Assembly: GCF_022045235.1 (NCBI RefSeq)
Contig: NW_027266319.1
Location: 26,598,001-26,662,000, forward strand
DNA from: Haliotis cracherodii
Taxonomy: Eukaryota
Direction: 5' to 3'
DNA: 64,000 bases
This document shows, piece by piece, positions 4,651 through 63,780 of the stretch. The position numbers and the translations under genes are program-made. The first letter of the stretch is position 1. Each line of letters opens with the position of its first letter. The notes beneath the pieces were generated by a model, which did no database searches, was not told the origin of the DNA, and was given only the letters and a program-made list of their open reading frames with translations.

Positions 4651-5555
4651 CACTTGTGTTTCTCGGTGTACGTACCTATTCGTGTTTCCACCATCTGTCC
4701 ATCTACCAACGAACGAGTGGGTTCTTTTCACTGCACAGGGTGAATGTACTGTTCACATAGCAACACGGTGGCTGGACAGCACTTGTGTTTCTCGGTGTAC
4801 GTACATATTCGTGTTTCCACCATCTGTCCATCTACCAACGAACGAGTGGGTTCTTTTCACTGCACAGGCTGAATGTACTGTTCACATAGCAACACGGTGG
4901 CTGGACAGCACTTGTGTTTCTCGGTGTACGTACATATTCGTGTTTCCACCATCTGTCCATCTACCAACGAACGAGTGGGTTCTTTTCACTGCACAGGGTG
5001 AATGTACTGTTCACATAGCAACACGGTGGCTGGACAGCACTTGTGTTTCTCGGTGTACGTACATATTCGTGTTTCCACCATCTGTCCATCTACCAACGAA
5101 CGAGTGGTTTTTTTTCACTGCACAGGGTGAATGTACTGTTCACATAGCAACACGGTGGCTGGACAGCACTTGTGTTTCTCGGTGTACGTACATATTCGTG
5201 TTTCCACCATCTGTCCATCTACCAACGAACGAGTGGGTTCTTTTCACTGCACAGGCTGAATGTACTGTTCACATAGCAACACGGTGGCTGGACAGCACTT
5301 GTGTTTCTCGGTGTACGTACATATTCGTGTTTCCACCATCTGTCCATCTACCAACGAACGAGTGGGTTCTTTTCACTGCACAGGGTGAATGTACTGTTCA
5401 CATAGCAACACGGTGGCTGGACAGCACTTGTGTTTCTCGGTGTACATACATATTCGTGTTTCCACCATCTGTCCATCTACCAACGAACGAGTGGGTTCTT
5501 TTCACTGCACAGGGTGAATGTACTGTTCACATAACAACACGGTGGCTGGACAGCA
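4651..5555. repeat. 129-bp tandem repeat, 7 nearly identical copies
   Basis: 43-aa periodicity in ORF 4682-5587; units differ by 0-2 nt. Confidence 0.95.
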
Positions 5556-7755: not shown

Positions 7756-8795
7756 AGTGACAAGAATGATGTCCGATGCAATTCCCTAATTTGACTTGTA
7801 CCAAAAGTTCCCCTGGTTTTTCAGGTGAACAATTGACTTGCCGTTGCATGTGTTTGTGACGGGTGCCACAGGTGGGGCAGGATACGCTCACCTTCTCGCC
7901 ATCACATGGTATCATCACTGTTTGATAGTGATTCATAAACACATGCTAATGGTACAGTCGGAATCGTACAGTCGACTCTGCTTTTGGCAGAGATTTCTTA
8001 TGAATATGGAAAAGGTCACTTTTGTTTTATTGTCTAACGCCGCACTCGGCAACATTCCAGACATATGACGACAGTCTGTTAATAATCCAGTGATTGATGT
8101 TGTGAGGAACGATCCACGCCGCCCTGGGGTCCAAGTCTTACCTGGAATCTTCACGCGGAAAAATATTTTCAGGCCAAACATTGTCACGTAGAACCCAATA
8201 TTAGGTTGTTGTTGTTTAACGCCGCACTCCAATATTCCAACTATACTGAATCGCAAAAGAAACGTCACCCCAAGTAACATTGCATGAAAAGTTGTCATTT
8301 AAATATCTCGGTAATTTTTGTCAAAGTTTAACATTACCTTGTCCGGAAAAATGAAATTTGATGATAAAAAAACAAAGCAGATGACAATAAAACCGATAGC
8401 CCAAACGCATCACGGCAACGGCCATGGTAACCTCCGTGCAAATTGAAATACACATGCGTTCCCCCATTTCTTGCCCTATAAAAATCCACCCAGATCGGAT
8501 AACATTCATTCGTTATTGAATTGCTACTCCATGCCAAGATTGACAAGAAATCAGCGACAACGAAACGAAGTTTTTAAAAGTAATTAATAATGTACAGATG
8601 GTTTCATTAAATTCAACATTGCATAAATATTCAAATCTCTGTCAGTATGATTCAAAATGTTTGTTTATTGTTCAGGGCGCCTTCTACATTTTCAAAGGCG
8701 TGGTTTACTTTCGGGTCAGGGATTTTCTACGTGTTGTGTTTCTCGCGGCCAGACCCCTCGCATCGCCGGCAGCACATGCACAGCAGGATGATGAA

Positions 8796-9338
8796 CATCT
8801 TCCCGAGGCAAGAGAGTTAACTGACTTTAAAAGTCCAGTTTCCACCCTTGCCGAACTAGGCTGGAATTCCTGGGCTCGATCGTAGCGCCACCAGTGGCTA
8901 TTGCGAGTGATGTCCTTTCTATGCCTCTCCGATTGACCAATCAGATTCAACCTCTCGTATCACATGCATTTGCTTCAAACAAAACGGTGGCGCCCAGTCG
9001 AGACGATCTGATTGATAATCAAGATCTATATTGTGATAAAACGAGTCTTACATCGCGAAGTGCATCAAATCACGTGAGCACCTTGACTAAATGCATGAAA
9101 AGATTTAGAAAATATCTGTTGACAACGGGTTAGCGGTGCACATGTTTTGCAAATCCTGCAGTCGACCGAAATCTGCATGACACTTTACGAACCGGATTTC
9201 GATTTCAGTGCGCGATTTTGATTGGACTATGCATAGACTCGTTAGTCCAGCCAAAGTGTAACTCCATAATACCAGCCTGGTTCGGCAAGGGTGGAAACTG
9301 GACCTTAATAGTCAGTTAACTCTTGTCTCGGGAAGATG
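8796..9338. mobile_element. 543-bp MITE with terminal inverted repeats (TIRs) and a 9-bp TSD (Mutator-like by TSD length)
   Basis: Ends CATCTTCCCGAG / CTCGGGAAGATG with ~70-bp imperfect TIRs; TSD gatga(t/g)gaa at 8787-8795 and 9339-9347; empty site in the intact gene near 33570. Confidence 0.9.
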
Positions 9339-9384
9339 GATGAGGAACTGCAGGGCGCACATCCCGATCAGGCAGCCGACCATA

Positions 9385-10290
9385 GTCCAGAACACGTCAT
9401 GCCGTACCACTGAAACACAGAACACGTCATGCCGTACCACTGAAACACAGAACACGTCACACTAGTACACAACTGACACACAGAACACGTCATACTGATT
9501 CACCGCTGAAACACAGAAAACGTCATACTGATACACCACTGAAACACAGAACACGTCACACTGGTGCACTACTGAAACACAGAACACGTCACACTAGTAC
9601 ACAACTGACACACAGAACACGTCATACTGATTCACCGCTGAAACATAGAACACGTCATACTGATACACCACTGAAACACAGAACACGTCATACTGATTCA
9701 CCGCTGAAACATATAACACGTCACACTGATGCGCTACTGCAACACAGAACACGTCATACTCATTCACCGCTGAAACACAGAACACGTCATACTGATACAC
9801 CACTGAAATACAGAACACGTCATACTGATACACCACTAAAACACAGAACACGTCATCCTAATACACCACTGAAACACAGAACACGTCATACTGATACACC
9901 ACTGAAACACAGAACACGCCATACTGATACACCACTGAAACACAGAACACGCCATACTGATACACCACTGACACACAGAACACGCCATACTGATACACCA
10001 CTTAAACACAGGACACGTCATACTGATACACCACTTAAACACAGAACACGTCATACTGATACGCCACTGAAACACAGGACACGTCATACTGATACACCAC
10101 TGAAACACAGAACACGTCATACTGATACACCACTGGAACACAGAACACGTCATACTGATACACCACTGAAACACAGAACACGTCATACTGATACATCACT
10201 GAAACACAGAACACGTCATACTGATACACAACTGAAATACAGAACACGCCATGCTGATGCCCACTTTAAATCATAACACGCCATGCTGGT
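9385..10290 (-). repeat. 33-bp minisatellite (~27 units), pseudogene copy of the intron 2 array
   Basis: Unit ctgaaacacagaacacgtcatactgatacacca is the reverse complement of the 31640-33525 unit. Confidence 0.95.
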
Positions 10291-10732
10291 TCCCCACTGA
10301 ATCTATCCCTGAATAATACGTAAAGGTTTGCTTCGCATACCAGAGCAGTACCGAAGGTCAAATTCGAGTTTAATAACAGCATATTTCAGAATTCGGGACA
10401 ATAATAAAGAATGTTCTCAAAAACTTTAAAAAATGAGTTTGTGCTTAGACACTGTGGAAGTTTGGACTTAAGGCAACATCAGGGCAAGAACTTCTTAGTC
10501 TTATGTTAAAAGTGAGCTGATTCATCTGGTAGGGACGTGATCTGAACTTACTTAGGTTGGATTTTGTCTTGTCTGCTTCATTGTTTTTGTCTGATCCACC
10601 TGTCTTTGGCTCATATATCACTTCCGGACCAAATCCCGAGCATCGAGGCCAGTTCTTTGGCTGAGCAGGGTGTTTGTTCTGAGCCTCGTTGATCATCATC
10701 GCCATCCCGTCAGCGTTGTGCATCTCAATGTG

Positions 10733-11580
10733 AAAACGTTAGCATCTATCAATAAACAGTTAAAGGACAAATAAAGTGCGTTTTACGTTCCCATCTGTAA
10801 CAAGATCTAATTTTCATTTCACTTGTGGTGATATCACATTGTAATATCTAAAAATACCAAGGATTGTGATTAAATGAGACATGGAAAAACTGTAATAAAG
10901 AACTTTGCAAATCAGCCAGCCAGACACGACAGGAGGAATGTCTTTTCAAGTTTTTAGCAATTTGTATGAAACACTGGTTGAAACTGCAATGTTTTCTTGA
11001 GCAGCAATGTGGAATGTATACAAATACAAAGCGATTAATACCCTGCAACACTAGGCATGCCATTTTGTTCCTTGGAGTCAGGAAAATACCTCTCATCTCG
11101 TTGTTAATGGCGGCATAGGGCTCAACTCATCTTTTGTAAATATGCACAGAGGCGTTTTCATTTTTTGTTTGTCTAATTCGAACACCAACAGCATATGATA
11201 GAATATGTTGTAAACAATTTATCTGGTCCCAAAAATATAATAATATCTTGTTTTTTTAAGGTGAAATAACTGGTCAATTTATATGTTGTTAATCATATTA
11301 TACAATCTACTTTTTCAAAAAGAAAGAATACTGACTTAATCCAAGAATGTATTATTAACAAATATGACGATAACTGGAGAAAAGATTTATGGGATGATTC
11401 TAATAATATCAATGGCAACGAGTTAGGGATTTGTCCACATTGTTTTAGTATCTATAATGTTCGCACTGTTGAAGATGAGAGGCACTTTTTAATGTCATGT
11501 CCTTTTTGTTCTGACTTAAAAGATGAACTTATCCACGGAATTATGTATCTAACATTTAACGACTGTTGAAAAAATTATTC
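10733..11580 (+). mobile_element. Degraded LINE ORF2 3' fragment (RTE-X-like)
   Basis: ICPHC...TVEDERHFLMSCPFCSDL C-terminal Cys/His motif; mirror of 24990-25836. Confidence 0.7.
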
Positions 11581-14038: not shown

Positions 14039-14284
14039 GATAATGTTTCCTGTTAAGGCGACTTTTAGGTACAGACCCTTATGAGGTTGTCAAGCAGCCG
14101 GTAATAGAATCTATACCGGAATTCATCCTTACAGTAAATAAAGAAGTTGTTATCCATAAATTGTCAGCTAAGTATAGGTCCACTCATTTTGGACCAGCAC
14201 TTTTGTCAATCACCTAAACATTACTTGCCCATATTAATGGGCCTGTTATGAGCAAACATAACCCTGATACTAGTACTATTCTCA

Positions 14285-16000
14285 GGTGAAATGTCTGGTG
14301 AACTCACGGGTGAAATGTCTGGTGAAAAGTCAGGTGAGATGTCTGGCGAAATGTCCGGTGAGATACATTAGGTGAAATATCCGGTGAGATGTCTGGTGAG
14401 GTATCCGGTGAGTTTTCTGAGGAGGTATTTGGTGAGATGTCTGGTGAAATGTCTGGTGAGATGTCTGGTGAGATGTCCGGTTAAATGTCTGGTGAGATGT
14501 CCGGTTAAATGTCTGGTGAAATGTCCGATGAAATGTCTGGTGAAATGTCCGGTTAAACGTCTGGTGAGATGTCCGGTTAAATGTCTGGTGAAATGTCCGG
14601 TGAGATGTCCAGTGAAATGTCCGGTGAAATGTCCGGTGAGATGTCTGGTGAAATGTCTGGTGAAATGTCCGGTGAAATGTCCGATGAGATGCCCGGTGAA
14701 ATGTCCGGTGAGATGTCTGGTGAAATGTCTGGTGAGATGTCCGGTGAGATGTCCTGTGAGTTGTCTGGTGAAATGTCTGGTGAAATGTACGGTGAGATGT
14801 CTGGTGAGATGTCCGGTTAAATGTCTGGTGAAATGTCCGATGAAATGTCTGGTGAAATGTCCGGTTAAATGTCCGGTGAGATGTCTGGTGAAATGTCTGG
14901 TGAAATGTCTGGTGAAATGTCTGGTGAAATGTCCGGTGAAATGTCCGGTGAGATGTCTGGTGAAATGTCTGGTGAAATGTCCGGTGAAATATCCGATGAG
15001 ATGCCCGGTGAAATGTCTGGTGAAATGTCCGGTGAGATGTCCGGTGAGATGTCCGGTGAAATGTCCGGTGAAATGTCCGGTGAGATGTCCGGTGAAATGT
15101 CCGGTGAGTTTTCTGGTGAAATGTACGGTGAGATGTCTGGTGAAATGTCCTGTGAGATGTCTGGTGAAATGTCCGCTGAAATGTCCGATGAGATGTCTGG
15201 TGAAATGTCTGGTGAAATGTCCGGTGAAATGTCCGATGAGATGTCCGGTGAGATGTCTGGTGAAATGTCTGGTGAAATGTCTGGTGAAATGTCTGGTGAG
15301 ATGTCTGGTGAGATGTCCGGTTAAATGTCTGGTGAGATGTCCGGTTAAATGTCTGGTGAAATGTCTGGTGAAATGTCCGGTTAAACGTCTGGTGAGATGT
15401 CCGGTTAAATGTCTGGTGAAATGTCCGGTGAGATGTCCAGTGAAATGTCCGGTGAAATGTCCGGTGAGATGTCTGGTGAAATGTCTGGTGAAATGTCTGG
15501 TGAAATGTCCGATGAGATGCCCGGTGAAATGTCCGGTGAGATGTCTGGTGAAATGTCTGGTGAAATGTCCGGTGAAATGTCCGGTGAGATGTCCGGTGAA
15601 ATGTCCGGTGAGATGTCTGGTGAAATGTACGGTGAGATGTCTGGTGAAATGTCCTGTGAGATGTCTGGTGAAATGTCCGCTGAAATGTCCGATGAGATGT
15701 TTGGTGAAATGTCTGGTGAAATGTCTGGTGAAATGTCCTATGAGATGTCCGTTGAGATGTCTGGTGAAATGTCTGGTGAAATGTCTGGTGAGATGTTTGA
15801 TGAGATGTCCGGTGAGATGTCCGGTGAAATGTTTGGTGAGATGTTTGATGAGATGTCCGCTGAGATGTCTGGTGAGATGTCCGGTGAGTTGTCTGGTGAG
15901 ATGTCCTGTGAGTTGTCTGGTGAAATGTCCAATGAGATGTCTGGTGAAATGTCCGGAGAGATGTCTGGTGAAATGTCTGGTGAAATGTCCGGTGAAATAT
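14285..16000. repeat. 12-bp minisatellite (GGTGARATGTCY)n, ~140 units, with internal block duplication
   Basis: Directly visible; the same variant series recurs at 14581 and 15409 (828 bp = 69 units). Confidence 0.97.
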
Positions 16001-16224
16001 GAGGTGACCTTATAGGGCGAAAATAGCGTTACGACTGTCGCAAGTCAATATGCAAGTGATTTTGTTATTATGACATTGATAGCGTCCAGAATGTGTTGAA
16101 AGGGTTCCCTTTCAGAAGCGATATATACTAAAACACTGTTTGTGGTCGTAGCACAAAGCTTGCGAAAGATACATTCATAGCTCTGGCGTTGCATTTAGAC
16201 ACAATAGTCGCTTTAAGTTGCGTA

Positions 16225-27344: not shown

Positions 27345-27944
27345 GTAAGGCGTTATTCATATTTTATGACTCTCCACTTTATATTAAAATATCATGAAAC
27401 TATTATCACGGGTGTGACACGCTATGCATGTCTGTTAAATGTCTGAACTCTCAAAAGAGATTATATAAGTTGAAAAGATGCCCAATTTATACATGTCAAG
27501 TGTTGTTCGTGACCGTGTATAATTTTCTATTTCCTGTCGGCAAATGTCAGAGGACTCACTGCCAATTTCATCTCAGCGAAACTAAGCGGATTAAATTAGA
27601 CATAATCACTTTTAAATGTCAGCGTTCGTTACCGTGTACAGATCAGGTCTCCCCATGTTCAATCTAGCACCCCATGTAACGATGCAAGACTCACACGTTT
27701 AAATCTAATCACAGGTTCATCATGGGTATGTGGTCGGCATTTCGATTTGTCATAAATAGCTCTACACCTTAGACACTATTAAACAGAACCGACCAAATGT
27801 CAATTTTCCTAGTCACCATTAACTTAGCTTGGTTTACTCGTATGTTTTTATGTTAATATTGTACCATGTTCTTTGTAAGTCCTGGCCGTACAATGTAAAA
27901 TATCCCAAATTTAATGTGAAACACCTGAAAAATCGTTATTTTAC

Positions 27945-28560
27945 TTGACGTTTCACCTGACATTTCACTTCACGTTTCACCTTACATTTAACCTACCATT
28001 TCACCAGACATTTCACCCGAAATTTCGCAAGACTTTTCATCTGACATTTTACCAGACATTTTACCTGACATTTCACCTGATATTTCACCTGAAATTTCAC
28101 CCGAAATTTCGCAAGATTTTTCACCTGACTTTTCATATGACATTTCACCTGATATTTCACCTGACATTTTACATGAATTTTCTCCAGATATTTCACTTGA
28201 CGTTTAACCTTAAATTTCACCTGAAAATTCACCAGATATTTCACTTAACGATTCACCTAACAATTCACCAGATATTTCACCCGACATTTCAGCAGACATT
28301 TTACATGACATTTCCCAATATATTTCACCAGATTTTTTACCTGACATTTCACCAGACCTTCACCTAACATTTCACCAGATATTTCACCTAACAACTTCAC
28401 CAGACATTTCACTTGACATTTTACTTGAAATTTCACAAGTTATTTCAACTAACATTTCAGCAGACATTTCCCCAGAAGTTCTCCTGACATTTCACCTGAA
28501 ATTTCTCCAGACATTTCACCAGATATTTCACCTAACATTCCATCTGACATTTCACCATTA
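27945..28560. repeat. 12-bp minisatellite (AGACATTTCACC)n, degenerate, in intron 1
   Basis: Reverse complement of the 14285-16000 unit. Confidence 0.92.
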
Positions 28561-29378
28561 CTTGACATAGTCTGACATGTTATATTTCGTTTTAATTTGT
28601 GAAAAAGGATTTGAAAATCTTGGATCAGTTTTCATCCTAATTAAACCCCAGTACAGTATCAATCTTCAAATATTATCGACTTTAATTATGCCTGCGTCCA
28701 CAACACGGTGAATGGTCAAGAATCGTCCTGATCCTAATTCGAAACAGCTTCGACCAATACTATACGTTTCATTCTGATATGGATGGGAAGCCTAATGTGA
28801 TGCATGTTTTCCAAGACGTTTACCATGTTCATACCCACAAGCACAGGCATGGTGCTGACAAGCCAGTAACATGGAGAACCTCAGAATGAATCCTTAAACT
28901 CAGCTAATTACGGCACCTTAGGCGACTTGCCCTCTAACACTTCAAGCCAGACACTTGAATCCTACTATTAACAAGAACGTTTACAACTGAATCCACGTGA
29001 CGAACTTAGAGATTATCTCTCGCTAGCTGACATATTTTGCTATGAATATGCCGGATTTCTTTTGAACAGATACATATCGAATTAAGGGATAAATAGAAAA
29101 ATATACTCAAATATGTGATTTACTGGTATCTGTCTCCTGTGAAGACTGTCCTTCGTCCCCGCCAACGCTCGGGATTTTTCCGCAATTCCCTGTATGGTGC
29201 TGGCTACTCTTATATTGCCGTTTGTTATTGTTTACACCAGTCCATGGCAACTAGTGGATAACTGTATGAGAAAGACATGCATTGTCAAGTGTCTTTTTGT
29301 TTAACGTGAAATGTGTTTTATACTCGGTGTGTCTATTTTTAAGAGGTCTTGACTGGTATGGTCCCCGTTGTTTTGCAG

Positions 29379-31345
29379 GATGAGGTGTGTCCGAGCAGTC
29401 ACGTGTCTTCTGCTGTCAATCATTTCAGCGAGGGGCGTGGTTTCAGAATGCCTGATGACAGATGACGAGTGCGTATTTCACCTCACCATTAAACACCGCC
29501 TGACCATGATGAAAGACAACATGGCTGTTTTCCCTTCTGGTCGGAAATTGTATAAGTATGACGTCACTAACACGTCAGAAGCAACCCCTATGACACCGGA
29601 TGGAATAATCCAAGCCGACGGCTATGAGCCACAGCGCTTGGTCACAGTTGCTAACGGCACCATGCCTGGACCCGCCATTGTCGTCTATGAAGATCAAACG
29701 GTCATTGTCCATGTTAAAAATGAGCTTTATAACGAGGGCGTATCAATGCATTGGCACGGTCTTCATCAAAAAGGCACCCCGTTTATGGACGGAGTATCGT
29801 TCATTACCCAGTGTCCAATTCTTCCGGGTCAGTCGTTCACCTACAAGTTCAAGGCTAAACCCAAGGGCACCTTCTGGTATCATTCTCACAATGCCAATCA
29901 GAGGACCATGGGCCTTCAAGGTCCGCTGATTATCAAAGAGAAGAAAGCATCGACGATGGATGAAATGATAATGGTGCTACAAGACTGGAACCACGACGAC
30001 TCAACGACCGTGCACTTAAAGATGGATTTCGGTGGATTCGAGGAACGAAAACCTCTTAATACAACAGATGCTCTCGATGGCTCCCATTTCAGCCGGTATT
30101 TCATGACAAGTGGTCTTATCAACGGCAAGGGCCGTCTCTATGATAAGTTCGGGCGTCATAATGACGCACCGCTATCTATTTTCACAGTGAGACCAAATCA
30201 ACTGTACAGGTTCCGGGTCATCGCCGCTGGCCACCTCTACCCATTCCGGGTGTCCGTGCACGGTCACGAACTGACCATTGTGGCGTCCGACGGGTATGAC
30301 CTGCGTCCAGAAGTCGCAGAGTCCTTCATCATCAACCCTGGTGAGAGAATCGACTTCATCCTTAACACCACGAACGTAGTGGACAACTACTGGATTCGGG
30401 CACAGACTCTCGAGGAAGGTGTGGACCACAAAGCTGAAGCCATCCTCAGATACGAAGGAGCGCCTGATGCAGAACCAACTTCATTCAGGAGAACATGCTC
30501 GGAAGCTGATCCGTGTCGCGTCATCAACAGCCCTTTCACTTACTACCCAATAGTTAACACTGAAACAGTCAGGTTCGACCAACTCAAATCTTTGTCTAAT
30601 GATGACCCTGCTCCTCCGGTGACCTCTGGGAAGTTCAAAGAACACTTCCTCAACTTTGCTTTCCCCGGCTATACACATTACCCAGGTCAAGTCAATGGAC
30701 ATAAATTCAAGATGCCTCATGTCGCGGGTCTGACCCAAATGAATGAGATTGATACATCATGCGACAAAGTAGACTGCGGGTTTAACAAGACCTGTCACTG
30801 TACATACACCCTCAACCTTACGTACGGAGACACTGTTCAGATGGTCTTTCTCAACATGGGCAACGGGAAGGGTTGGTCTCATCCGATTCATCTCCACGGC
30901 CATTCCTTCTACGTGCTTAAGATGGGCTATGCCATACAAAATAGCTCCACTTATCAAATCGAAGGAAGTAACATGGACATAAGCTGTAACGGGGATCCTT
31001 TTTGTAATGCTCCTACATTTGAAAACTCATCGTGGACGGGGGATAACATACCTGGCCTGGAGCTGAAGAACCCACCGCGGAAGGATACCATTATAGTGCC
31101 AACTGGTGGTTATGTGGTTGTGAGAATCCGCGCTGACAACCCTGGGCTGTGGTTCATGCATTGCCACATTGAGATGCACAACGCTGACGGGATGGCGATG
31201 ATGATCAACGAGGCTCAGGACAAACATCCTGCTCCGCCAAAGAACTGGCCCCGATGCTCGGGATTTGGTCCGGAAGTGATATATGAGCCAAAGACAGATG
31301 GATCAGACAAAAACAATGAAGCAGACAAGACAAAATCCAACCTAA
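29379..31345 (+). CDS. Laccase-like multicopper oxidase, main exon (signal peptide plus three cupredoxin domains)
   Basis: Uninterrupted ORF with all four copper motifs: HWHG, WYHSH, HPIHLHGH, WFMHCHIEMHNADGM (Met as T1 axial ligand); signal peptide MRCVRAVTCLLLSIISARGVVS; donor CTAA|GTAAGT at 31346. Confidence 0.96.
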
Positions 31346-31639
31346 GTAAGTTCAGATCACGTCCCTACCAGATGAATCAGCTCACTTTTAACATAAGACT
31401 AAGAAGTTCTTGCCCTGATGTTGCCTTAAGTCCAAACTTCCACAGTGTCTAAGCACAAACTCATTTTTTAAAGTTTTTGAGAATATTGTTTATTATTGTC
31501 CCGAATTCTGAAATATGCTGTTATTAAACTAGAATTTGACCTTCGGTACTGCTCTGGTATGCGAAGCAAACCTTTACGTATTATTCAGGGATAGATTCAG
31601 TGGGGAACCAGCATGGCGTGTTATGATTTAAATTGAGCA

Positions 31640-33525
31640 TCAGCATATCGTGTTCTGTATTTCAGTGGTGTATCAGTATGACGTGTTCTGTGTTTCAGTG
31701 GTGTATCCGCGTGGCGTTTTCTGTGTTCCAGTGGTGTATCAGTATAACGTGTTCTGTGTTTCAGTGATGCAGTATGGCGTGTTCTGTATTTCAGTGATAC
31801 AGTATGACAAGTTCTGTGTTTCAGTGGTACAGTATGACGTGTTCTGTGTTTCAGTGGTGTATCAGTATGACGTATTCTGTGTTTCAGTGGTGTATCAGTA
31901 TGACGTGTTCTGTGTTGCAGTCGTGTAACAGCGTGGCGTTTTCGATGTTTCAGTGGTGTATCAGTATGACGTGTTCTGTGTTTCAGTGGTGTATCAGCGT
32001 GGCGTTTTCGATGTTTCAGTGGTGTATCAGTATGACGTGTTCTATGTTTCAGTGGTGTATCAGTATGACGTGTTCTGTGTTTCAGTGGTGTATCAGTATG
32101 ACGTATTCTGTGTTTCAGTGGTGTATCAGTATGACGTTTTCTGTGTTTCAGTGGTGTATCAGTATGACGTGTTCTGTGTTTCAGTGGTGTATCAGCGTGG
32201 CGTTTTCGATGTTTCAGTAGTGTATCAGTATGACGTGTTCTATGTTTCAGTGGTGTATCAGTATGACGTGTTCTGTGTTTCAGTGGTGTATCAGTATGAC
32301 GTATTCTGTGTTTCAGTGGTGTATCAGTATGACGTGTTCTGTGTTGCAGTCGTGTAACAGCGTGGCGTTTTCTGTGTTTCAGTGGTGTATCAGTATGACG
32401 TATTCTGTGTTTCAGTGGTGTATCAGTATGACGTGTTCTGTGTTGCAGTCGTGTAACAGCGTGGCGTTTTCGATGTTTCAGTGGTGTATCAGTATGACGT
32501 GTTCTGTGTTTCAGTGGTGTATCAGCGTGGCGTTTTCGATGTTTCAGTGATGTATCAGTATGACGTGTTCTATGTTTCAGTGGTGTATCAGTATGACGTG
32601 TTCTGTGTTTCAGTGGTGTATCAGTATGACGTATTCTGTGTTTCAGTGGTGTATCAGTATGACGTGTTCTGTGTTTCAGTGGTGTATCAGTATGACGTGT
32701 TCTGTGTTTCAGTGGTGTATCAGCGTGGCGTTTTCGATGTTTCAGTGGTGTATCAGTATGACGTGTTCTATGTTTCAGTGGTGTATCAGTATGACGTGTT
32801 CTGTGTTTCAGTGGTGTATCAGTATGACGTATTCTGTGTTTCAGTGGTGTATCAGTATGACGTGTTCTGTGTTTCAGTGGTGTATCAGCGAGGCGTTTTC
32901 TGTGTTTCAGTGGTGTATCAGTATGACGTGTTCTGTGTTGCAGTCGTGTAACAGTATGACGTGTTCTGTGTTTCAGTGGTGTATCAGTATGACGTGTTCT
33001 GTGTTTCAGTGGTGTATCAGTATGACGTGTTCTGTGTTTCTGTGGTGTATCAGTATGACGTGTTCTGTGTTTCAGTGGTGTATCAGTATGACGTGTTCTG
33101 TGTTGCAGTCGTGTAACAGTATGACGTGTTCTGTGTTTCAGTGGTGTATCAGTATGACGTGTTCTGTGTTTCAGTCGTGTAACAGTATGACGTGTTTGAG
33201 TTTCAGTGGTGTATCAGTCAGACGTGTTCTGTGTTTCAGTGATGTATCAGTATGACGTATTCTATGTTTCAGTGGTGTATCAGTATGACGTGTTCTGTGT
33301 TTCAGTGGTGTATCAGTATGACGTGTTCTGTGTTTCAGTGGTGTATCAGTATGACGTGTTCTGTGTTTCAGCGGTGAATCAGTATGACGTGTTCTGTGTT
33401 TCAGTGGTGTATCAGTATGACGTGTTCTGTGTTTCAGTGGTGTATCAGTATGACGTGTTCTGTGTTTCTGTGGTGTATCAACATGTCATATTCTATGTTT
33501 CAGTGGTACAGCATGACGTGTTCTG
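31640..33525 (+). repeat. 33-bp minisatellite (~56 units) filling intron 2; each unit is a splice acceptor plus the exon 3 start
   Basis: Unit tggtgtatcagtatgacgtgttctgtgtttcag compared with the real junction ttctatgtttcag|tggtacagcatgacgtgttctgg; 528-bp (16-unit) block repeated at 31921 and 32449. Confidence 0.96.
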
Positions 33526-33709
33526 GACTGTGGTTGGCTGCCTGATCGGGGTGTGCGCCCTGCAGTTCCTCATCCTGCTGTGCATGTGCTGCCGGCGATG
33601 CGAGGGGTCGGGCCGGGAGAAATACAGCATGGACAACACCCCTGACCCCAAAGTAAACCACGCCTTTGATAATATAGAGGGCGACCTGAACAGTAAACAA
33701 AAATTTTGA
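33504..33709 (+). CDS. Multicopper oxidase terminal exon: transmembrane helix and cytoplasmic tail
   Basis: Phase-1 junction A|TG gives MVQHDVFWTVVGCLIGVCALQFLILLCMCCRRCEG...NHAFDN...QKF*; hydrophobic span followed by Cys cluster and RR; total spliced CDS 2193 nt = 730 aa. Confidence 0.85.
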
Positions 33710-34084
33710 TTCATATTGACAGAGATTTGAATATTTATGCAATGTTGAATTTAATGAAACCATCTGTACATTATTAATTAATTTTAAAAACTTTTTAAGA
33801 AATCATTGACGAATCAACGACATTATCATATTGGTCAGTCGGGAGTTAATCAAGGACCAGTACTGTGCATGGAGGCTAAATGTCACTGGTGTGGCGGCAT
33901 TGGCTGTGTGAAAACCTGCAATTAGTTTGTTGATTGGGATCAGTTGATCAAAGATTTGATGTAAGTGGCCATTTCCTTCCGTATTATTGCAATTATTTTT
34001 AATATTCGAATGTAATATTAATTGTTGTTGACTCTAGCTACATGCAGTAAAACTGCTGCTCTAAGGAGGGTCCACATAAACTTA

Positions 34085-34172
34085 AGGGGCATTCACACAG
34101 TACAACTAGTTGTATACAATTTGTTGCATGCAACAAATTGTATACAACTAGTTGTACCGTGTGAATGCCCCT
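34085..34172. mobile_element. 88-bp fully palindromic MITE (PIF/Harbinger-like)
   Basis: AGGGGCATTCACAC...GTGTGAATGCCCCT, one mismatch, no loop, TTA on both sides. Confidence 0.8.
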
Positions 34173-34906
34173 TTAGATGGAAAACTCCAACATTCTGCCA
34201 CTTGAATCTCTATCACACGATGTGCGTACTGTAAAATTGGTCAAGCCGTGTTCACGTGTCTGGAATAGTGGAGTGAGTCATTGCAGTAGAACAGAAGACG
34301 AGCGTGTGGATCAATCAATCCATCGTCAGTACTTCACGGTATACACTTGATCATGAGCCAATACACATACGGCCTGGTTCTTGAGAGAGGGATACCTGAG
34401 TGTGGCCAATCGGCGCTCAGATTACACCGGCATTATTATATTGTGCCGCAGTCATCTACTCCACACATTGTTTCAATATCAGGCTATGGTAGGGCTCGCT
34501 CACAGTTCGTGCACGGAGTATCGCTCAATTGACTTTTGTGAGTTATACAAGACCACGTTTCACGAGCTGACTCAATACAGACACGCGCATTGCAGTCGTG
34601 TGTATTCACGGCTGATGGAGTTCTGACTTCCTTGGTCCTTGTGCACTTTGTATATTTACCTGTATAAAAATCACTTATTTTTTTATAAAACCATTTTACA
34701 GAACACATGATTCCTGTTTGTGATTTACCCAAGGAAGACATTAACTGTTGTTATGGCAACGCCCTTATATTATCTCGACTATGTGCTTCAGTGGTTAGCC
34801 CGATGCTCCACTGTAACTTGTTTGTACGAAGGGAACGGATGGCAGAGTTGTGTCCCTTGTATGCGAATAGTTGCGCCCTTTAGCTTGATGGGTCACTAAA
34901 CATTGG

Positions 34907-62289: not shown

Positions 62290-63414
62290 TGTCACGACTG
62301 TCGTAACTCACGTGTCTTAATGCACCCTTTGTGCTACGACTGTCGTAACTCACGTGTTTTTTTATGCAATTTTAGTGCTACGACGTTCGTGACTCCTGTG
62401 TCTTAATGCAACGTCAGTGCTACGAGTAAATCAGTCTTTTATTGTATCGCATTTCTGAAACCGTCCAACACATATACACAGCCTGAGCGCTATCAATGTC
62501 GTAAAAACAAAATTAATTGCATAAAGACTTGCAACACTGTGGTCGCCCAACAACTTCTCTCAGCCCTACGCCAGACCGACAACTTGCGTAATGTCGTGAG
62601 CTGCACTTATTCTCCCCCTCTCATGAGACAGGCGTTCTATTTTCAAGCATATTTGAAAAGAATTTGAACACTTGAAACATTATTTGATTTGTCTCTACAG
62701 CGTTTCCAGCATTCAATAAACTGGAAGGTTTGATACCGACTGTGAAAATATAAAAAAGTAAGCTTGAATACCCTCCATTGACACGATATGAGTAATTGAT
62801 TTCTAACTACACCTAAATGCCGAGGGTGGACAAAATGCATTTACAAAACGATCTGATATCAAGTCTTGCATAAAATGAACTTCAAATGTCTTTATGCGGG
62901 GTATTAGGAGTGTACCAACACAACATAACCATGCAGTGTCCCACGCCCCAGTTTGTATGGGGAACGTGCACGACACAACGCAAGCTGGGAGTGAGATATG
63001 TCGGGTGGCAGATCATTGTTAAGTTGAATCTGTGCATACAACTTTTCGACAGGCCGTAATATTTGAAAGCAGAAACTAACTCCGTTTAATTCATTGTGAA
63101 TTGAATATTGTAAATCTGGAATAATTTACGAGCATGTTTTTTTTACGTTCAAGGAAAACTGACACACATTTAAAACAGTTTCATGTCGCTGATATATTTG
63201 CTTTCCAAAAGGAACTGTGAGACATATAATTTGATAACTGAATGAATAAATAAAAACCGTAATCAAGTAATTGTCATTATTGGTACAGCATGCAATGCTA
63301 CGAAGGCAGTTTCTATCATGATGATACAATATGTCACTCAAGACGATGGTTTTGTAACTGGGCCAATAGCCTATGTTACGTGACAATTTAACACATTTGA
63401 GAATAAGTATTCCT

Positions 63415-63780
63415 TTTACCTGACATTTCACCTGACATTTTACCTGACATCTCACCTGACATTTTACCTGACATTTCACCAGACATCTCACCGGACTTTT
63501 AACCTGACATTTAACATGGCAATTCATCAGATAATTCACCAGACATTTCACCAGATATTTCACCTGACATTTCACCAGACATTTTACTAGACATCTCACC
63601 TGACATTTTACCTGACATTTCACCAGACATTTCACCCGACATTTCACCTGACATTTTACATGACAATTCACCAGATAATTCCTCCAACATTTCAACAGAC
63701 ATTTCACCTGGCATTTCACCAGACATTTCACCGAACATTTCACCGGACATTTCATCGGACATTTCATCGGACATTTCACC
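63415..63780. repeat. 12-bp minisatellite at the position paralogous to 27945-28560
   Basis: Same unit, followed by the same unique flank (ccattacttgacatagtctg...) as 28555-28760. Confidence 0.93.

Follow-up and report, generated by a model that had tools for sequence, protein, structure and literature searches.

A putative laccase gene of Haliotis cracherodii carries, at the end of its last intron, a long tandem array in which the 3' splice junction of that intron is repeated dozens of times. This raises the question of whether the repeated acceptors give rise to different proteins or whether the array is simply removed with the rest of the intron. A first-pass annotation of the locus had proposed that acceptor choice tunes the length of the stalk or switches the enzyme between membrane-anchored and secreted forms, with an inert intronic repeat as the fallback. 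We addressed this question in a window of 64,000 nucleotides (C56:26598001-26662000), the whole stretch of DNA analyzed here; positions without a prefix refer to this window, and C56 coordinates lie on the same contig. The evidence favors the fallback. With a probability of about 0.85, the array is a mirage-type minisatellite, in which a piece of the 3' splice junction was amplified in the last intron of the laccase gene, the array is removed whole, and the copy attached to the exon is the one detectably used.

The host gene and the array in its last intron

We characterized the host gene from its open frame and its domains. The open frame at 29368-31452 encodes three cupredoxin domains, Cu-oxidase_3 (PF07732, 7e-43), Cu-oxidase (PF00394, 3e-28) and Cu-oxidase_2 (PF07731, 2e-37), all with Pfam E-values far past the cut-offs, and its translation contains the copper-binding histidine motifs HWHG, WYHSH, HPIHLHGH and HCHIEMH. 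Together, the domains and motifs point to a laccase-like multicopper oxidase, and, judging from its sequence, the host gene is a membrane-anchored enzyme of this type. The term phenoloxidase, used in the first-pass annotation, holds in a loose sense only, the enzyme being a laccase-type multicopper oxidase. The closest public proteins are Haliotis laccases, and their 90%-identity cluster includes NCBI XP_071082505.1 (Haliotis cracherodii, 723 aa), whose printed N- and C-termini fit a join of 31345 to 33504 exactly (...KTKSNL-M-VQHDVFWTVVGC...KQKF).

The big coding exon (29377..31345, forward strand), delimited by the open frame, the Pfam matches and the match to XP_071082505.1, encodes a signal peptide and the three cupredoxin domains and ends in phase 1. 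Its last base, 31345, is followed by the donor (CTAA|GTAAGT), which together with the unique 5' part of the last intron occupies 31346..31648 on the same strand. The coding part of the last exon (33504..33709, forward strand), defined by translation and by the C-terminus of XP_071082505.1, comprises a juxtamembrane segment VQHDVFW, the hydrophobic transmembrane helix TVVGCLIGVCALQFLILLCMCC and a short, basic cytosolic tail that ends at the TGA at 33707-33709. The 3' UTR extends to at least about 34031, with one contig spanning 33680-34031. Further downstream, a short stretch at 34083-34175 contains a 14-bp palindromic repeat (TACAACTAGTTGTA) and showed high depth in all four sequencing runs. 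Its contigs continue beyond the stretch into unrelated sequence, and it is probably a repeat element that is both dispersed and transcribed.

Between the unique part of the intron and the last exon, Tandem Repeats Finder identified a minisatellite of 33 bp x 57.3 at 31649..33525 on the forward strand (88% matches, score 2921), in agreement with the roughly 56-copy acceptor array that had been described before the transmembrane exon. In register, the unit reads TGGTGTATCAGTATGACGTG-TTCTGTGTTTCAG, in which 20 nt similar to the beginning of the last exon precede a 13-nt polypyrimidine tract ending in CAG. The earlier description of an acceptor fused to a variant of the first codons of the last exon was thus confirmed, with TTCTGTGTTTCAG as the intron-end part and the remaining ~20 nt as the exon-like part. 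Each unit also contains a branch-like UGAC motif positioned 18 nt before the AG. The final array unit is TTCTATGTTTCAG|TGGTACAGCATGACGTG, so the array closes on the genuine junction TTCTATGTTTCAG|TGGTACAGCATGACGTGTTCTGGACT, and this unit takes in the genuine acceptor as well as the opening codons of the last exon (TTTCAG|TGGTACAGCATGACGTGTTCTGG). The unit therefore holds both intron and exon sequence, and its end copy is the genuine junction, as shown by XP_071082505.1 and by the spliced contigs described below.

Including the genuine site, the array contains 57 acceptor anchors, of which 55 keep the AG. Spacing is regular, with unit lengths of 33 nt (51 times) and 30 nt (three times) and one 1-nt deletion near 33195. 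There is also a higher-order period of 528 bp (16 units), with a self-identity of 95.2% at a 16-unit shift versus about 91% at other shifts. Degenerate, old-looking units (…ATCAACATGTCAT…) occur at the array edges. At the 3' edge, the sequence of the boundary unit or units (33449..33503, forward strand) shows the changes CAG to CTG and ATCAG to ATCAA, leaving 53 nt (33449-33501) without any AG before the AG of the genuine acceptor (33502-33503). The same degenerate boundary unit lies near the 3' end of the array of a paralogue, referred to below as paralogue 2.

Copies of the array in the laccase cluster and other repeats

To place the array in its genomic context, we compared it with the neighboring laccase genes. 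The 33-bp array was found at four places, in the gene described above (gene 1), in two intact paralogues and in a broken inverted fragment, each time at the same position in the gene. Paralogue 2 (C56:26662778-26664754), just outside the window, shares 96% protein identity with gene 1 and has an array of 33-bp units with 63 anchors at C56:26664955-26667021. Paralogue 3 (C56:26677538-26679496, reverse strand; 76% protein identity) carries a 30-bp version of the unit, TGGTACAGTATGACGTGTTCTGTGTTTCAG, in about 20 copies at C56:26676158-26676910. The fragment (8652..10735, reverse strand) is a pseudogene detected by tblastn (95% identity over aa 600-659, 61% over the tail) that keeps the last 60 codons of the big exon, an identical donor and an intron start 97.6% identical to that of the intact gene. 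Tandem repeat analysis placed its 33-bp array, with 26-28 copies, at 9388-10301 on the reverse strand. The transmembrane exon of the pseudogene carries a TAG and is interrupted by some 540 bp of inserted sequence, bounded by terminal inverted repeats of roughly 28 bp and read from the sequence at approximately 8796..9338 (reverse strand). This insertion, with the ends CATCTTCCCGAG.CAAGAG..TAACTGAC, looks like a MITE-type element.

The four arrays thus have copy numbers of 57, 63, about 20 and 26, with AG-bearing anchors numbering 55/57 in gene 1, 61/63 in paralogue 2, 18/23 in paralogue 3 and 26/26 in the pseudogene. Because the array is present at the same place in two intact paralogues and the fragment, it must be older than the local gene duplication. 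It is an old array with fast turnover, whose copy number and unit type have been altered since the duplications.

Several further features of the cluster were observed. At the intron start of paralogue 2 (L013 2843-2925), the unique 5' part has been replaced by a (TG)n/(TGCG)n microsatellite, and the introns of gene 1 and paralogue 2 are about 71% alike at their 5' part versus 97.8% identity between the big exons. Arrays of a 12-bp unit (GGTGAAATGTCT and its complement) adjoin each laccase copy, at window positions 14282-16007, 27938-28556 and 63414-63780; the duplicated segment therefore seems to be [12-bp array]-[laccase]-[33-bp array]. These 12-bp arrays yield long spurious open frames, such as that at 14372-16015 (547 aa). 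Another array, at 4651-5555, lies downstream of a further laccase paralogue that ends near window position -400; it consists of a 129-bp unit x 7, 98% identical, with one frame fully open (301 aa) and an acceptor-like TTCTTTTCACTGCACAG|G. We considered it as a second junction repeat of that upstream laccase and rejected it, as no exon link was found.

We also asked whether the acceptor unit could derive from a dispersed repeat family. This was rejected, as the distant matches in the genome (67-72% identity) proved to be different minisatellites with periods of 8, 10, 13, 20, 31 and 33 bp, sharing only GTATCAG-like words with the laccase unit. The 33-bp unit is therefore specific to the four arrays of the laccase cluster and was not borrowed from elsewhere. 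A second acceptor minisatellite was found in an unrelated gene on C34, at about 16.08 Mb, where CTGTGTTTCAG|TG units form an array of 31 bp x 40 that abuts an apparent exon. This array (units TGTGTCTGTGTTTCAG|TGTTGTGTGACACTG) spans about 16081921-16083131 on the reverse strand (L017, G000:C34:16080500-16084500) and ends at an apparent exon of 125 nt. Like the laccase array, it is a splice-acceptor array abutting an exon, but the gene is unrelated and the unit sequence is different. In addition, a 33-bp x 34 array at L021 (G000:C12:28941559-28942662) has a unit with an acceptor-like TATTCTGTGTATCAG, with no adjoining exon recognized.

Acceptor use and the reading frame of the decoys

To determine which acceptors are used, we mapped assembled contigs from four runs of four organisms on 33167-34200, a segment that takes in the final 11 units as well as the exon and 3' UTR. 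After the end of the big exon, TGGTACAGCATGAC marks a genuine junction and TGGTGTATCAGTATGAC a decoy junction. In run X1, a 428-nt contig contained 323 nt ending in ...AAATCCAACCTAA (that is, ...GACAAAATCCAACCTAA(C)) joined at 33505. In run X4, two contigs ending in ...ATCCATCCTAA (...AAATCCATCCTAA and ...GAATCCATCCTAA(C)) were joined at 33504 and 33505, respectively. The C variant in these contigs matches paralogue 2 (CAG|CGGTACAG). As these contigs represent spliced molecules, both runs hold RNA, and all three spliced contigs used the exon-adjacent acceptor. Neither a decoy junction nor a loose contig end at a decoy within 33167-33503 was present among the contigs listed for the four runs. 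Because contigs drop rare variants, these data show that the genuine junction is present and do not show that other junctions are absent. The first-pass annotation had suggested following junctions from the donor at 31345; at the level of contigs, and for decoys within 33167-33503, those of two runs lead to 33504/33505.

The repeat itself appeared in the runs only as short contigs of 43-108 nt lying wholly inside the array, including 63-nt contigs of the consensus unit. At k = 31, a cyclic repeat of 33 bp would give contigs of 63 nt. The consensus-unit contigs (60-63 nt) of X1 and X4 had a depth of 5-16 versus 124-145 for the exon. Since each 31-mer of the repeat contigs is present about 37 times in the gene cluster, depth per copy is about 0.1% of that of the exon, as would be expected from traces of DNA or of unspliced RNA. 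As a loose upper bound, transcripts with a perfect unit amount to about 5% (X1) and 12% (X4) of exon depth.

Public protein models gave the same picture. All 13 models of the clade, from H. cracherodii, H. rufescens, H. rubra and H. asinina, use the exon-adjacent acceptor and open the last exon with x-V-(Y)-Q/R/H-(H/Y)-D-V/L-F-W. None of the 13 contains repeat units, and a search of the C-terminal 114 aa of XP_071082505.1 against a collection of 5.8 billion proteins returned only the same four clusters. Masking of the decoys by RNA structure was not supported, as the last eight units fold no better than shuffled sequence (z = 0.36).

We next considered the reading frames that the decoys would open, listing each unit-register AG and translating from the donor base. 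The list comprised 55 decoys plus the genuine site. The donor is in phase 1, and every CAG|TG joined to it would, as had been noted, yield A|TG, a Met codon. Translation also bore out the claim that eight decoy acceptors (33207, 33240, 33273, 33306, 33339, 33372, 33405 and 33438, forward strand) have a frame open into the transmembrane exon; they read to the TGA at 33707-33709 and would lengthen the protein by as much as 99 aa of VVYQYDVFCVS units. Decoys upstream of 33207 all run into units with a TAT to TAA change, as had also been noted, with stops ending at 31928, 32357, 32456, 32951, 33116 and 33182. The TAA is carried by 6 of the 56 units, giving a probability of about 0.36 for nine consecutive stop-free units, and the stop-free run beside the exon therefore fits chance.

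The variants of the unit show little sign of coding constraint. In gene 1 and the pseudogene, 14, 12 and 12 distinct types were found at codon positions 1, 2 and 3, comprising 25 nonsynonymous, nine synonymous and four stop changes, with no third-position or synonymous excess; by our own judgement, this looks neutral, roughly as for unconstrained change. In paralogue 2, only the last three to four acceptors read through, so that the open run of gene 1 is not conserved there. In paralogue 3, all 20 units are open and in frame with the exon, which we estimate to be compatible with chance at p of roughly 0.4, assuming a dozen or so independent variants and a stop in roughly 7% of single changes.

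The unit length most likely explains both why the decoys are frame-compatible and why each unit has 11 codons. The paralogues differ at the exon start by a one-codon indel, MVQHD versus MVYQHD, and the unit lengths of 30 and 33 mirror this indel, suggesting exchange between the exon start and the array, as opposed to selection on translated repeats. That the array might be a translated part of the exon was ruled out by its TAA units and 1-nt deletion, together with the evidence from spliced contigs and protein models. For gene annotation, the open frames within the array are traps.

A splice-junction minisatellite and its counterparts

These results bear on several explanations of the array. 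One is the functional ladder of alternative 3' splice sites put forward in the first-pass annotation, in which in-frame decoys would lengthen a Tyr/Cys-rich stalk and upstream ones would give secreted, truncated forms. Its appeal lies in the polypyrimidine tract and AG kept in 55 of 57 units, each with the UGAC motif 18 nt upstream, in the eight decoys that read through to the transmembrane exon, in unit lengths that are multiples of three and in the fully open array of paralogue 3 (20/20 units). However, decoy junctions within 33167-33503 occurred in none of the spliced contigs, which come from two organisms, the 13 public protein models show none at all, and the depth of repeat k-mers resembles background. 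The unit variants, with scattered stops and no third-position or synonymous excess, also argue against coding constraint, and the open run is at chance level and was not kept in the 96% paralogue. The proposed control of stalk length or anchoring by acceptor choice is thus not borne out, and we regard such a ladder as highly unlikely.

The array might instead act in cis without being translated, its U2AF or branch-site decoys slowing splicing or pausing transcription so that copy number tunes laccase output. Its retention in three intact paralogues, with protein identities as low as 76%, would fit such a role, and by way of analogy intronic VNTRs can reportedly affect splicing, as in ABCA7 (PMC5954066). 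Yet copy number varies threefold among the paralogues, and a dead gene fragment still carries the same kind of array, as neutral persistence would predict; a role in cis is accordingly very improbable in our assessment. Long, near-identical arrays are also hard to assemble, which makes the exact copy number uncertain and could prompt the view that the array, or its length, arose from a mis-assembled shorter repeat. Against this, the array was assembled at four places with differing variants and flanks, and the 63-nt contig, which needs at least two adjacent perfect units, was recovered in four of four independent runs of four organisms; this contig is the sole record of the array beyond H. cracherodii. 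An assembly artefact is extremely improbable.

Under the preferred reading, that of a mirage-type minisatellite, tandem amplification of a 33-bp piece across the 3' splice junction of the last intron produced the roughly 57 copies. Along with the polypyrimidine tract and the AG, this piece includes a possible branch site and about 20 nt from the beginning of the exon. The amplification probably occurred through slippage and unequal exchange. After gene duplication, copy number changed and homogenization proceeded separately in each gene copy. The array acts as intron, with only the copy contiguous with the complete exon detectably serving as acceptor. Decoys near-identical to the genuine site lie as close as 66 nt upstream. 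The genuine site is most likely favored because it alone, of all the copies, leads into a complete exon body, with terminal-exon definition and exonic enhancers as the means. The loss of AG in the boundary units just upstream may aid the genuine site in genes 1 and 2. Because paralogue 3 has no AG-free zone, the exon body is the candidate that could apply more generally.

The term 'mirage' was reportedly coined by Canestro in 2002. It denotes tandem repeats across exon-intron boundaries, described in amphioxus in Adh3, the globins BflGb6 and BflGb9, TnC and PGBD5 (PMC3087553, PMC3902484). In these amphioxus genes, many copies retain AG/GT, regular splicing is reported to be undisturbed, and the repeats evolve in concert while boundary units escape homogenization (PMC3087553, PMC3902484). 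The laccase array likewise spans an exon-intron boundary, repeats splice signals and has degenerate units at its edges. Its unit combines the 3' end of an intron with the 5' part of the next exon, as does the duplicated piece in BflGb6 (PMC3087553, PMC3902484). Unlike the amphioxus cases, it occurs in a mollusc, has 57-63 copies versus 3-6 in the globins, consists of a short (33 bp), frame-preserving unit and was inherited through a local gene-family expansion.

Comparable arrays that multiply the donor site are known in human genes, namely the 37-bp VNTR in intron 7 of F7, the 12-nt minisatellite of IFI6 (6-16) and a VNTR at an exon/intron border of CBS (PMC1557585). In F7 the exon-adjacent site alone is used, whereas IFI6 and CBS also use the two pseudo-sites nearest to the genuine one (PMC1557585). 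In all three, the first unit spans the splice junction and identical pseudo-sites come after the genuine site. The laccase array likewise has an end unit across the splice junction and near-identical pseudo-sites next to the genuine site; as in F7, the copy attached to the exon wins. The laccase array differs in multiplying the 3' splice site where the human arrays multiply the 5' splice site, and, unlike in IFI6 and CBS, pseudo-site use was not seen in the contigs over 33167-33503 or in the protein models. It is a large, paralogue-shared case of an already described repeat type, with no demonstrated isoform switch.

A more speculative reading, to which we give little weight, is that low-level use of the in-frame decoys at 33207-33438 occurs in a particular tissue, at a particular stage or under stress; a broader version is that abalone genomes have a mutational bias toward amplifying 3' splice junctions. 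If the former were true, the catalytic domains of some laccase isoforms would be separated from the membrane anchor by one to nine additional Tyr/Cys-rich units of 11 residues each, and turnover of the array would alter the available isoform repertoire. If the latter were true, abalone genomes would be a natural test bed for how the spliceosome chooses among dozens of identical sites.

As it stands, the array is a tolerated intronic repeat that leaves laccase function unaltered. It nevertheless provides a natural experiment, with about 55 near-identical 3' splice modules upstream of the one used and three expressed paralogues that differ in copy number, and in this it mirrors the human F7 intron-7 model for 5' splice-site choice. 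Considered alongside further arrays of this kind in the genome, it suggests that abalone commonly carry splice-junction minisatellites, which would then extend beyond lancelets, and it is relevant to ideas on intron gain through junction duplication.
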